A DNA stretch of 63,657 bases from Octopus bimaculoides (GCF_001194135.2 NC_068984.1:52745416-52809072), one strand, 5' to 3'; counted from the stretch's first letter, positions 15,801 to 21,800 are shown. The notes: a model not told the origin generated them from the sequence alone. Numbers and translations are program-made.

Positions 15801-18800
15801 CCCGTGTTTCGTACAGAATTTAGAATCTTGAAAAACTTACTTTTTTCCAGCTAAACATTTCAAGTTTTTTTTCTTTTTTGCTCCCCACTTCCGTCCTTTT
15901 TCTTTCTTCATGAAGTGTGTGACTTCGAGGAGACGGCTATTCTAAAACTCCATCAACTTTTAAAATTCTGGTTGGTAAAAATGTCAAGCTATTTGGTAGA
16001 TATGGGGGAACTTAATTCTAGAATTCTTATATGGCTTTTCACTTATGGTGTTCACTAATGTATATAAATGCTAATTTTATGCTTAAAATCTACATTGATT
16101 TTATTCGCTTTGTATTATGAACAAAATATTGCTAATCTAATGGAATGCTTTAAACTAAAGTTCCTTGGTATGAATCTGACATGGGAGAATGCGTGTAATT
16201 AGGGGAAAATTGGCATCTCGGGATATGCTAACCGTGGCCACAATTGACGGAGTTGTAGGAACACCGTCGTGACATACGGCTTGTCTTGTGTATTTTAAAT
16301 CTAGCGGAGCTAATTCTTCTTCAAGACTTAGACACTCGATTTCTTCCGAGAAGAACGAGAAGAATCAACCTCTACTGAACTATTGGACTGGTACTTTTAT
16401 TGATCGATCCCGAGTGGATTCAAATGCTTCGACAGCATTTGAACGCACACTCACATACATCACGATACTCCACTGTTACCCGCACTGTGACAACACTTCA
16501 GGTGACAACAAAAATTAATAGCAGCTTGCGGAACCTCCAGCTTCAACTAAAGAAATACACACTACCGCTTATTGAGTACTCTACCTCCGCCCAGTTAACA
16601 AATCAAATACATATATATGGGAGAATATACAAATAATAACAACAGACGAGGACAGGTGGTGTAAATAACAAAAGTATATATTAGTATGACGCTCGGGAAT
16701 ACGGAAAGTCTTTGACGTTTCGAGCTACGCTCTTCAACAGAAAGAATACGGAGACAAGGAGAAAAACACGGAGAAAAAAAAAATTGAATAGTGTTCAGTC
16801 AACGGTCAATCATAATATATATCCTTTTGGAATGGTTTTTGTATAATACCATACCATACGATATTCTGGTGCCTACGCATAAGTACCATATTCAATCTTG
16901 AATCTAANNNNNNNNNNNNNNNNNNNNNNATATATATATATATATATACATATATACACTCACATACACAGACACAATGAAGTGTCTTTGAAAATCAGGT
17001 ATTTTTAAGATATCTTATAATTTATAATAGTTTTAAGTGTTCAAAAAGTTAAATGTATGAAGTAGACGCTTGTTGGTAAGAAGCATCAATAAGAATGTAG
17101 TTCCCCCAAAGCTGTCTTCGATGAATACTGTTTTCCCTCTGATGCTGTGTCTGTTTCCCTTATTTAGTAATGGCAGTTCATGTGTATAATTATTACTACA
17201 GCACTGGTTAATATCAGTAAGGCACGCATATATAACTAACTCTCTTCAAAAACTCATTTCTGAAATAATAATAAATAAATAAAAAAAATAGTTAACGGAA
17301 AACAGCTGAAAAATATTTTGGCCGCTACTAACTATACGCAACTCTCACCTCACTCTGTAATTCAGTCTTTGTTGGCCTGCCTGTTTTCCTCACCTCCTTT
17401 CCATTTTGTGTGTGTGTGTGTGTGCACGCGCGCTATTCCAAAGGCGTTAGCAAATGTGAGACAGTTGCGAGAGGAAATTGAAATCTCTAAAAACGTTAAT
17501 CTATTCCGTGTGCGAGCGTACGTGTACTCTTTCAAGAGTGTTAAAAGTTTATATGAATTTATATATATATATATAATGTGTGTATAAATTTGTCTACACA
17601 CACGCAGGGTGTGTATATGTGTGAGTGCGTATGAGGGTGTGACTAAAATCTATAGAAAAAAAAAAACACTTCTTACTTTTTCAAAACTTACACAATTTAA
17701 AAACTTTAATTTAGTTTTCATTTCTAAACAACAACCAACTGTGTTTTATAACTCTTCATTAACTGAGAATAAAAACTAAAAAGTCTAGAGAGAACAACTA
17801 TTATTTGTTATTATGCCTCAAAGTTCAACTTTTAGTTGTACCTTCTTAGTTTTATCGTGATTTTTTTCTGTGTTAATATACTTTCATGACCATCTATGGC
17901 CAATGTGGGCAGAGACAAGTGATCCGGAGAGAGGAGGACGACGGCATCGGGAGGACGTGCGTGATTCATTGCCGCTATGGTAGAGGGAGGTTTTCATGAC
18001 GTCATAGCACCATATATGGAATGCTACGCATGGAATGCTGCCAGCAACAAAACGCCAAGAACAGAATCCATATTGAGGCTTTGTCATCCACTGCCGTTCG
18101 TCCCTCTGTTAGCCGAAATCTCCTTAAAGTTTCTCTTTAAAAAAAACTTGGATACCACAAAAAGTAAACTAAACAAGTGACTCAATTTTTATTAACAATT
18201 TACATACATAATTATATACGTAATTAACATGAGATACATAGATTTAATGAAATATATGTAGTCATACACACATCTATATAGAAAAAAAATATCTACGTAT
18301 AAATATTTATACAGTTGCGCGTATGTGTGTGTGCGAATAGATTCACTTGTTGAGTAAGTGGTCTGTGGCAGACAGATACAGTTGCGCGGAAGTAACTTAT
18401 TGGTCAGTGTGTGCTTTTCATTAATACTAAGATGTGGGCGGAACTACGTTGACTGAAGCTGGTGCTGCTGAGACAATGGGGGAGAAATGTCCAGCGGAAC
18501 CGGACTTGTGCGATGTCGAGGGAGTTGACCTCTCGCAGGAATCCCTCGGTACGTTGGAATCTGACCAAGGCATTGTAGGGTCACAAGACAGCTACACTTC
18601 TATACTTCCGGAAGACGGTGCTAAAGTTAAGAAAAAGAAGAAAGATGGCAAAAAGACTAAGAAGAAGAAAAGTTCCAAGTCCAAATCTAAAGACGGAGAT
18701 TCGAAAGACAGTGATGGCAAAGAACATAAAACAAAAAAGTCGTCGAGTAGTCGACGCCCTGAACCCGAGGGGGGTAACACAACCTCAAATGTCACCATGG

Positions 18801-21800
18801 ACGAATTTGACAAGGTTATTTACAATAATGATCCCTTATTTTCTGACCTTGAGCTTTCCGACAAAGAGGGTGACTCCGAGTTACAGGTGCCGTCCAGGCA
18901 AAGACGCCAAACTCGTTTGATGGGTGTGGGTAGCAGTGGAATAGTCATTCCCTGTACCCAGTTCGGCTTAAATTCGAACACCATGATCAAATTTGCAATC
19001 ATAAGCACTGAACTGCAAAATGTCCTTCAAGTGTCGCTGAAAAGGGTATGGATGAGATGTCTCTTAATATTAAGCTAGCTCCTGATTAATTCTGCATGGC
19101 TGATTCACCCATTCTTACTACTACTACTACTACTACTACTACTACTTGTATTGTTACTACTACCATCTTTATTGCTGCTGCTACTACTACTACTACTACT
19201 TTTTATTATTACTGCTGTTGTTACTACTATTACTGCTATTGCCGCTGCTACTACTATTCTCCCTCCCTCATCTTTATCAGTGTGTATATTAATGAATACT
19301 ACTACTACTACTACTACTACTATCGTCATCCGCTGTCTTTTTTTTTTTTTTTTTTTTCTTCAACTGTTGCTGGATATGCATGTCTGCTGTTGCTGCTGCT
19401 GTTGATGACGATGAGTTTTGACGACTTCTCTCTTCCACAAACTGACACTTTTCCTTACTGGGTTTTAGTTTAGATGAAAACTTTTTAGAAACTGGTGTGC
19501 CTGTCAGTTGTCCTTTTCTTAGTTCTTATTTTATATGATTTTCATACTTTAGAAAAATAAAGTACATATATATCATGTAGAGGACAGTTGAGAGAATAAT
19601 TCTAAATGAGCACTTATTTATTCTGAAGAAGTTTTAACTAACTTTTATTCAAAGTAATCTTAGACATATTGCTATAACAATTTGAAACAAGAATATTTTA
19701 CTCATGCATAAAATATTTTAATGTTACTTAACGGAAAATTTATTCATAACGGTGTGCTGAATAATTAATCATTTAGAGTTCAAAAATGTTAAGATATGAA
19801 AAATAAGATAATTTAAATACTTTTCAAACAGTTCTCAATGCATATATGTTAATTAAGTATCGTTGCTCTAGATCGATAGAGCTTTAACTTACAAGCAACG
19901 GCTGCTGGTCGATTTGAGGGTTTCGATTCTTTAATAATTTAACAGTGATTTAGTGTGTCAGTAAGTGCAACAACATGAAACTTCACACTTGCAAAAGAAT
20001 TTTAAATTAGATGTGTCGTCAAACTATAGAGTATTGGCATGAGCAACGAATGAAAAAAAAAACCACTTCGCAAAGTTATGTAGAGTTAAGCGTGTATACG
20101 TGTCTTGACGCTAGGGAGTCTAAGCAGGCAACAACTCGTATCAGCGATAACTATAAACTGGCATCTCTCCCTCTCTCTTTTTATTTGTCTCTCTCTCTCT
20201 CTCTCTTTCTTCTTTTACGTGGGTGTGTCTGTCAGTTGCAGTAGACATATAGCTTTTGCTGCTACGTATTACAGCTTCAACCTCCTCCTCCCCTTTTCAC
20301 CTGCCGCGACGGAGGTAGGGGTAACAGAATCTTCCTTAAGCCATTTTCTGCTTCTGCCTGAGATTCGTGTTTCCCAAAATAGTGGCCAGGATCAGGTTAC
20401 TTACACGGGATAGATCTTTCAATGTGTCTCTTTACTATCTACTTGATATTGCCAATTTAAGTATGTATCTGGTAGCTAACTTAGGCTTTCTTGAGTAGGA
20501 GTTAGTTCTTGAGAGAACACTATTACTTATAACTAGCTAGATGAGGCTTGTTATTTCTTAGAATAGCTGCTCTTGCTAATGTACTTGGCTACTAAGAATA
20601 TATGTTGCCTGTTAGCATCTTAACTTCTTCAACAAGCAGGCTTTGAACAACTTTTCCAGTAACGTGATTTAACACTTCAACACACTCAAACAATATTTTT
20701 TAAATATCATAGAATTCTTAGGATATAGTTTTTTTTACACAGTTCTGGGTGTGTCCAACATACATTTTCTGAATGCTTTTACTGATTAAAAATTGTTGAA
20801 TAAATATTCTATAAATGTTTATAATTTTAAACATTAAGGAGTTTATGAAGTGTGGGAGAGGGTATAATAACAGGTAACTTTTACAGACTTGGTGTTTGGA
20901 TCTAATATTTCATCATCTCTGCTTGTGGATTGCTGCATTTATCCTGTATTAACTTACTAACTACCATTTTTCAAAGTAACCGTTTGTTTCATTTTCAGCA
21001 ATAATATTCCTCACTAAAAATTCTTTAATAAAACTTTGCAAACTATTTTGTTTTATAGACAAAAAAAATTGTTCTTAAATGGTTACATATAAGTCAATCT
21101 TTGATTGAATCCATTAGTACTACAGAGCCTATGCTTATTATTATTATTATTATTATTATTCCAGTAAAAGCACCAACCTAGCAAAATCTTTAATGCACTG
21201 ACAAAAATGAATAGTGGTATTTCTTTTGGATTTTTACATTCTGAGCTCAAATTCCACTGAGGTCAACTTTGCCTTTCTCCTTTTGGAGTGGGGGGGTCAA
21301 TAAAATAAGGATCATAGGACTAGGGTTGGTTAATGTAATCGACTAACCTCCTCCCCAAAAATTTCAGGCCTTGTGCCTATATTAGAAAGACATTACTTAT
21401 TAGTTCCTGTAACTGTAGCATCATCTCTGTATAGAATGTTAGAATATCACCAGTAACATTCTCATGGAGACCTGGTACTGATTTTCTTGGTAGATAATCA
21501 GATAAAGATATTTCTTGCCCACAGATATAACACTATGCCTTGAGTGGGATGTGAACACGCAACCAGCAGCTTCATTTCTCCAGTATATTTCTTGGAATGG
21601 TTACATTTTTTTGCTTAACTTATTTAATCTTAAGAATGTTTATAGTACTGTATGACTTTACCAAAATAGTTGTAATCAAAGTTTTTTTAATCATTTATAA
21701 ATACTATAAAAATTCTGTTTGAATTATAACCCATCATTAAAAAGTACTTTTAGCATTTTATTTTTATCTAAAACCTTGAAATTGTTAAAAATCAATAAGT

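Follow-up and report, generated by a model that had tools for sequence, protein, structure and literature searches.

The window analysed here is a stretch of 63,657 nucleotides from Octopus bimaculoides (GCF_001194135.2, NC_068984.1:52745416-52809072), and it contains a single + strand tropomyosin (Tm) gene whose exons follow the classical plan. An alternative first coding exon of 190 codons (18476-19045), here called the head exon, lies on the same strand between exons 2 and 3. The head exon is intact, selectively maintained, and orthologous to the head of the atypical Drosophila tropomyosin aTm1 (Tm1-I/C), and the core through which that head contacts kinesin is preserved in it. Its assignment as an aTm1-type head exon is made with high confidence. 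Splicing to exon 3, which is inferred in octopus from orthologous gene models and reading phase, would probably give an aTm1-type isoform that serves as an adaptor or regulator of kinesin-1 rather than as an actin-filament tropomyosin. Binding of the octopus isoform to kinesin-1 is, by analogy with the fly protein, slightly favoured.

The head exon and its probable junction with exon 3

The translation of 18476-19045 (+) agrees exactly with the 190-residue peptide of a preliminary description of this DNA, including its acidic start, Lys/Ser tract (residues 50-94), Arg patch, and end (residues 163-190). The feature is defined by its open reading frame (ORF), its translation, and its conservation across phyla. 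The start codon stands in a good context (gagacaATGg, with A at -3 and G at +4), and the start methionine is aligned with the starts of the mollusc orthologues (MG[ED]...). At the other end, GTATGG comes directly after the final codon AGG (19043-19045), which puts the exon end in phase 0 at a GT splice donor (19046-19047, +). A stop closes the frame 11 codons past 19045, and the genomic ORFs of other species lose similarity right after LKR/LRR.

The inferred splice partner of the head is exon 3 (42332-42465, +), which begins in phase 0 after a pyrimidine tract and an AG at 42330-31 (ttatttattcAG). Exon 3 comprises 134 nt, encodes Tm residues 81-125 (...ADESE-R) with a split last codon, and has the length found in the conserved tropomyosin (Tpm) exon plan of vertebrates. 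Its end had been given as 42466, but that position is occupied by the donor GT, and the true end is 42465. The signals of the proposed 19045-42332 junction, a GT donor and an AG acceptor in phase 0/0, are mutually compatible in octopus, as expected from the earlier proposal that the head is spliced in frame to exon 3.

The exons that the head would replace are exon 1a (12731-12844, +), which encodes the MDAIKKK... start in 38 codons, and exon 2 (13730-13855, +) with 42 codons. Because the head lies between these two exons and exon 3, and matches exon 3 in phase, the canonical N-terminus would be replaced, and the same claim made earlier is borne out. A third N-terminus is encoded by an exon 1b-like alternative first exon of 41 codons with a GT donor (35944-36066, +), the analogue of the exon that vertebrate short tropomyosins use from an internal promoter. 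Phase-0 compatibility implies that the three N-termini (1a+2, head, and 1b) converge on exon 3. The head thus resembles the first exon of short Tpm isoforms (exon 1b, vertebrate low-molecular-weight forms), in which an alternative first exon is joined to exon 3 and replaces 1a and 2. Exon 1b products are coiled-coil, actin-binding segments of about 40 residues, whereas the octopus head has 190 residues, is mostly disordered, and has no sequence similarity to exon 1b.

With simple repeats and N gaps excluded, no ORF in the 63.7-kb window other than the head ORF reaches 150 residues, and the head is present there in a single copy. The stop-free run at this place extends over 215 codons. In 200 shuffles of the window, the longest open run averaged 127 codons, and 190 codons were reached in one shuffle of the 200. 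The guanine-cytosine (GC) content is 45.6% in the head exon, compared with 33% in the window and 35.0% and 31.6% in the flanking kilobases.

Internal use of the head after exon 2, as in oyster and Schistosoma models, was considered for octopus and rejected. The 45 nt that precede the ATG contain an in-frame stop, a plausible acceptor is lacking, and the methionine matches the start codons of orthologues.

Some further features surround the exon. Two copies of the 11-mer acagttgcgcg, spaced by about 66 bp, stand roughly 100-170 bp before the head ATG (18310-18390) and could be a promoter element or chance. A long (TAC/ACT)n microsatellite lies directly 3' of the head exon (19120-19270). Runs of N are located at 3064-3270, 10988-11921, 16908-16929, 32465-32725, 42836-42845, and 54839-54848; of these assembly gaps, one precedes the head exon by 1.5 kb and another lies just past exon 3.

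Head isoforms in spiralians and arthropods

A single-sequence search with the 190-residue query gave 36 protein matches, with E values down to 1e-57 outside the genus. The ORF of a sister octopus is 96% identical to the head. Against the sister-octopus contig, the head exon has 0 indels and differs in 12 synonymous and 7 non-synonymous codons, while the 867 bp of upstream flank (17609-18475) contain 34 gap columns. Contig L001 (Logan SRR11869384) follows the genome collinearly through 860 bp upstream and 92 bp of the intron, and is therefore uninformative on splicing. Two more distant ORFs, probably from other cephalopods, are 58-61% identical to the head, and their C-terminal half is 78-83% identical. 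The cephalopod entries among the matches listed (P0001-P0003) are genomic-type read-through ORFs only, and no named annotation among the matches returned includes the octopus head exon.

These comparisons bear on the possibility that the head exon is a conserved-looking relic, silent or mere noise in octopus, and that the isoform has been functionally lost in cephalopods. It would account for the lack of a spliced cephalopod product and of a named octopus head annotation among the matches listed. However, that negative transcript result is weak given the apparent length ceiling of the listed proteins. Moreover, the 190-codon ORF is intact with its start context and donor preserved, indels are confined to the flank in the sister-octopus comparison, the two distant cephalopod-like ORFs keep the C-terminal half, and the exon exceeds its flanks in GC. 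A relic is thus very unlikely.

The named mollusc matches include Patella vulgata 'tropomyosin alpha-1 chain isoform X11', Magallana gigas, Plakobranchus, and Potamilus. The N-terminal half of the aligned heads is variable; it is acidic and includes a K-rich tract as well as LSQ[DE]S repeats. The motifs that begin at residue 93 follow a fixed order: RRPEPEGG, (M)DE(F/Y)D(K/R)(V/I)IY.N.PLFSD(L)E, a Pro/Arg patch, GI.IPC.Q.G, and a terminal motif ending in ....SLKR. RPEPEG, FSD, and T..K.AI...E..N are invariant in the aligned heads. The preliminary description had called the whole head low-complexity, which holds for residues 1-92 but not for residues 93-190, where a sharply conserved motif array is found.

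A head-only profile of residues 90-190 was searched against 1.84 billion cluster representatives. No arthropod was knowingly included in the profile, although three ENA rows in it had no taxon assignment. The search returned 87 clusters, of which 70 had E<1e-10 and the best reached 1e-41. Together with the single copy in the window and the one shuffle in 200 that reached 190 codons, these 87 homologous clusters and the match of a profile restricted to the head refute the idea that the frame is open by chance or stems from a repeat or transposon fragment. The chance or repeat origin, to which the microsatellites flanking the exon and the low complexity of the N-terminal half had lent some colour, is now of negligible probability.

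Head-bearing models are present in RefSeq for Aplysia californica (X10, XP_035829767), Haliotis rufescens (X10, XP_046340959), Mytilus trossulus (X8, XP_063434812), and the nemertean Lineus longissimus (X7 and X9, the latter being XP_064619042). A GenBank model of the annelid Paralvinella also carries the head. In six genera the head is joined directly to the equivalent of exon 3, namely in the RefSeq models of Patella, Aplysia, Haliotis, Mytilus, and Lineus and in the GenBank model of Paralvinella. In the tropomyosin model of the oyster Magallana gigas the head exon is placed after exons 1a and 2, and in flatworm models (Schistosoma species and the cestode Rodentolepis) it is likewise fused in after these exons. 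In addition, ENA contigs of about 1.8 kb, which are too short to be genomic, encode the head together with the rod (P0049). The spiralian RefSeq isoforms share with octopus the gene position, the MG[DE]... start, the motif order, and the exon-3 junction. Identity to octopus residues 90-190 is 54-61% in the mollusc models and 45% in Lineus. These isoforms are orthologues of the octopus exon, and they are automatic predictions without a described function.

The same models weigh on the idea that the ORF is a gene of its own, located within the tropomyosin intron and not spliced to exon 3. Such a gene would fit the ORF's own ATG and presumably own promoter, the database entries that hold the ORF alone (P0021, P0027), and the existence in ticks and copepods of a separate gene with the same helix. 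However, the stand-alone entries merely read through into the intron, and all informative models (the six genera and many arthropods) continue the head into tropomyosin exon 3. Furthermore, conservation ends exactly at the phase-0 GT, and the fusion of head and rod is proven in fly. A nested gene is therefore highly improbable.

Annelid-type heads (Paralvinella P0060 and the ORFs P0033/34/46/48/50/51/53/54/56/73/92/101) contain extra conserved Cys/His clusters, namely C.IH(S/G)K, CTC[KR], and ER(Y/H)HKR, and some of them begin with WQHTDF.P..C..CG. The pattern of these residues suggests a small zinc-binding element that is missing from molluscs and arthropods. In another locus (L003, ENA ERZ25069863 contig, 10001-10927), the head ORF is again flanked by tropomyosin-like ORFs, and a reverse-transcriptase ORF (14090-16198) is located in the downstream intron.

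Kinship with the fly protein is clearest at the end of the head. The last 38 head residues and exon 3 were used as the query for a PDB sequence search. The best match was 7BJS chain C (aTm1 252-334 in the complex of kinesin heavy chain, Khc, with aTm1), with E=1.5e-24. The alignment with this chain begins 25 residues inside the head, whereas canonical tropomyosins align from exon 3 only. Octopus residues 166-190 align without gaps to fly residues 257-281 (SSDTMMKFNIIRNELHNIMNTQLKR), 13 of the 25 positions being identical, and the alignment continues gaplessly into exon 3, which matches fly aTm1 282-326 and canonical Tpm 81-125. Fly residues 270-281 (ELHNIMNTQLKR) can be aligned with the ELxNxxxxxLKR-type end of octopus, and the motif earlier ascribed to the fly head is thus real.

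In the fly protein, the head ends at R281 and is joined to the Tm 81-165 segment (PMC8247599). A unique stretch, residues 262-281, lengthens the shared coil, and residues 259-324 form the ordered chain in a 2:1 Khc:aTm1 triple coiled coil (PMC8247599). The substitutions I267A/L271A/L279A abolish Khc binding, and L296A/L300A/L307A weaken it (PMC8247599). The fly numbering used here was anchored by the residues named in that paper (I267, L271, T277, Q278, L279, and A282). The six fly core residues I267, L271, L279, L296, L300, and L307 are all identical in octopus, where they correspond to I176, L180, L188, L205, L209, and L216.

Comparison of spiralian and arthropod head-only alignments by hhalign gave a probability of 97.6% and E=3e-12 over the 26-column helix. 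Among the matches of the spiralian head-only profile was also P0106, a head of dipteran type (...SSDTMMKFNIIKNELHNIMNNQLKR) that has RRPDPIGG further upstream and reached E=1.1e-4 for the whole library. The similarity of the head end to arthropod long heads, proposed at the outset, is therefore supported, and the profile search found heads in lophotrochozoans as well. Arthropod heads were found in Coleoptera, Hymenoptera, Hemiptera, mosquitoes, Collembola, crayfish, barnacle, krill, and spider, and the named members are Apis, Popillia, Lygus, Cherax, Parasteatoda, and Amphibalanus. These isoforms are usually short, with only a brief tail after the head and exons 3 and 4. In work on the fly, aTm1 has been regarded as a special case, and it has been described as 'present in Drosophilidae', with a binding site on Khc that is conserved from fungi to humans (PMC8247599). 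The occurrence of aTm1-type heads across arthropods indicates that the former statement is too narrow. With heads in tropomyosin genes or models of Mollusca, Annelida, Nemertea, Platyhelminthes, and Arthropoda, the suggestion that this isoform class is ancestral to protostomes has gained support.

Overall, the putative octopus isoform and fly Tm1-I/C (PDB 7BJG, 7BJN, 7BJS; PMC8247599, PMC5286366, PMC10948360) share an alternative 5' exon, a long and mostly disordered head, an exon 3 that is nearly the same, and an RP(E/D)P(E/I)GG motif upstream of the helix. The octopus head would, like that of fly, be joined at Tm residue 81. In contrast, the head has 190 residues in octopus and 281 in fly. 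Unlike the fly head, the octopus head has EFDKVIY..PLFSD, a GIFIPC-type motif, and a Lys/Ser tract, and it lacks the arthropod LRCxSxxTE...RCADYPGFAF block. The fly rod is truncated (Tm 81-165) and followed by a low-complexity tail, and Apis and Cherax are the same, whereas mollusc models mostly have a long rod. The mollusc RefSeq models measure 382-418 residues in total, and Patella X11 is truncated.

An aTm1-type helix followed by a coiled coil is also found in ticks and copepods (P0261, P0263, P0244, P0169, P0207; Ixodes LOC8027394, Rhipicephalus LOC119170385, and Lepeophtheirus 'TPM1'). These proteins share the LRC...YPGLAF...S.T(L/M)M(K/R)F..I.NELHNI....L(K/R)R helix with aTm1-type heads. 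Their rod has diverged (AEGEVSALRNRI..EENL / VDGEVSAL..RIK.LD..LEKSE) and does not correspond to the exon 3 that tropomyosins share. The genes appear to be a separate locus, so far in arthropods only. PF28422 is listed in one database record for a tick-type protein.

Architecture of the head and of the host gene

The structure of the octopus head predicted by AlphaFold2 (AF2) from 18 sequences is mostly disordered, with a mean predicted local distance difference test (pLDDT) score of 56. Helices are predicted only at residues 110-116 (EFDKVIY, pLDDT about 80) and 167-188 (pLDDT up to 86). No secondary structure is predicted before residue 110, and residues 1-92 are compositionally biased. In the Patella orthologue, the predicted terminal helix runs unbroken into the rod (helix 164-306, pLDDT above 90 from about residue 171). 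These models fit a disordered head with short linear motifs whose last part prolongs the coiled coil on its N-terminal side, in agreement with the fly crystals. The Pfam scan found no family for the octopus head or for the annelid, nemertean, beetle, and fly-like members, and in the head-bearing proteins scanned PF00261 was the only family and was confined to the rods. With no Pfam match and predicted disorder, the head does not have the MDAIKKK-type coiled-coil overlap start of a canonical tropomyosin.

The head can be divided into several segments, all on the + strand. The acidic N-terminal segment (residues 1-49, 18476-18622) is poorly conserved, has 12 D/E against 1 K, and shows pLDDT below 50; it contains an LSQES element that corresponds to the LSQ[DE]S repeats of mollusc heads. 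The Lys/Ser-rich tract (residues 50-92, 18623-18751) resembles a nuclear localisation signal, and its composition is conserved, with a K-rich tract across the aligned heads and an invariant K59. This tract may have a role in nuclear import or RNA binding. The RRPEPEGG motif (residues 93-100, 18752-18775) contains R-P-E-P-E-G, which is invariant in 18 aligned heads, and its arthropod counterparts are RPDPIGG in dipteran-like ORFs and RPEPEGAG in beetle. The next motif (residues 108-126, 18797-18853) combines the short AF2 helix at 110-116 with LFSD, in which F122, S123, and D124 are invariant, and is absent from the arthropod heads compared. The basic patch SRQRRQTR (residues 140-147, 18893-18916) has a nearly invariant R147, and this position is of the P.RP.R..R type in spiralians and RR.(K/N)RC in arthropods. 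The terminal amphipathic helix (residues 166-190, 18971-19045) is the homologue of fly aTm1 257-281, the stretch that extends the coiled coil and binds kinesin.

The rod is encoded by the downstream exons, again on the + strand. Exon 4 is present as four tandem, mutually exclusive copies of 118 nt each with AG/GT signals (47074-47191, 47253-47370, 47701-47818, and 48017-48134), and each copy encodes a different version of Tm residues 126-164. Exon 5 lies at 49714-49784, with a possible second exon 5 at about 49891-49941. Exon 6 has three alternative copies of 76 nt each (52712-52787, 53234-53309, and 53371-53446). Exon 7 is located at 56937-56999, and exon 8 includes 58688-58726, which is part of its span. 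Two alternative last exons represent exon 9 (about 60779-60867 and about 62256-62338). The candidate at about 60779-60867, which closes with a stop, resembles the terminal exon of the Aplysia, Haliotis, and Mytilus head isoforms, a weak likeness with E 0.19. For the head isoform, at least 48 full-length exon combinations are possible. Intron 1 contains (TA)n and (GT)n tracts (13200-13400).

Proposed role of the head isoform and its wider meaning

In the proposed mechanism, the head exon would be transcribed from its own upstream start and spliced from 19045 to 42332, in phase 0, onto the constitutive exon 3. The 80-residue actin-polymerising N-terminus (exons 1a and 2) would thereby be exchanged for the 190-residue head, and the segment needed for head-to-tail assembly on actin would be lost. 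The head would consist of a mostly disordered acidic and Lys/Ser part, with RPEPEGG, EFDKVIY..PLFSD, and the basic patch, and of the terminal helix. The helix (residues 166-190) would extend the exon-3 coiled coil N-terminally. By analogy with fly, residues 166-190 and exon 3 would attach to the tail of the kinesin-1 heavy chain at its alternative cargo-binding coiled coil. The isoform may then link kinesin-1 to some cargo, possibly ribonucleoprotein particles, or regulate it there, and the disordered head may act in regulation or localisation, again as in fly. Kinesin binding, RNA binding, and filament formation have been demonstrated for the fly protein only (PMC8247599, PMC5286366).

A genuine aTm1-type isoform might instead serve mainly as an intermediate filament (IF)-like structural polymer, or as a nuclear or chromatin protein through the Lys-rich tract, with the helix used for homodimerisation. 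According to Cho et al. 2016, as relayed in PMC5603733, fly Tm1-I/C forms IF-like filaments. In addition, the antiparallel aTm1 homodimer uses the same helix surface as Khc binding (PMC8247599). The conserved composition of the K-rich tract and the long rod of mollusc models would also suit such a role. On the other hand, the helix residues that are most conserved across phyla are those buried in the Khc complex. The low-complexity tail implicated in filament assembly in fly (PMC7519307) has no evident counterpart in mollusc models. Head and rod of an IF-like head-rod-tail plan are present, and an IF-like or low-complexity tail is not seen in these models. A mainly structural or nuclear role is accordingly unlikely, if clearly the strongest of the alternatives.

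Several points weigh against a kinesin-1 adaptor or regulator in octopus. No octopus RNA or protein spanning 19045-42332 is found among the matches listed, but the listed proteins appear to extend only to about 1.7-2.3 times the query length, so an octopus isoform of about 390 residues could be missed and this negative is weak. The similarity between spiralian and arthropod heads is local: only the terminal helix is strongly alike, and RPEPEG is partly so. In the middle of the head each clade has motifs of its own, LFSD and GIFIPC in spiralians and LRCxSxxTE...RCADYPGxAF in arthropods. Inhibition of Khc in fly requires the N-terminal domain of aTm1 (PMC10948360), and this region has no demonstrated octopus counterpart. 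Lastly, mollusc RefSeq models have a long rod and not the truncated rod and low-complexity tail of fly, so that the filament-forming properties of the fly protein may not carry over.

The protein class is already known from fly, and the isoform is automatically predicted in several molluscs. No prior statement was found that octopus has the head, that spiralian heads are homologous to the aTm1 head, or that the kinesin-binding helix is conserved across protostomes. Similarly, no paper was found that ties mollusc or other non-drosophilid isoforms to aTm1, and Cho et al. 2016 and Veeranan-Karmegam et al. 2016 may treat conservation. As far as the matches listed show, the octopus isoform is unannotated.

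It is quite possible, if somewhat short of probable, that the aTm1 head is an ancient module, at least as old as the protostome ancestor, through which the product of a tropomyosin gene becomes an adaptor or regulator that binds the kinesin-1 tail, and not a drosophilid invention. Judged by sequence, the partner surface on the tropomyosin side is as conserved as the Khc site, being kept in molluscs, annelids, nemerteans, flatworms, and across arthropods. The conserved core, the helix, is now separated from the lineage-specific head motifs that may carry regulation, and the 25-residue motif and the profile can be used to find such isoforms. If the proposal is true, RPEPEGG, EFDKVIY..PLFSD, and the annelid-type Cys/His clusters would point to a second conserved interaction, and a light-chain-independent kinesin-1 adaptor would be a general feature of invertebrates. 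The terminal helix is near-constant from octopus to fly, which suggests that a kinesin-tropomyosin transport complex is older than oskar. Such a pre-oskar complex would serve other cargoes in spiralian oocytes or neurons, and animals whose neurons are large and whose mRNAs are localised, octopus and Aplysia among them, lend themselves to testing it.

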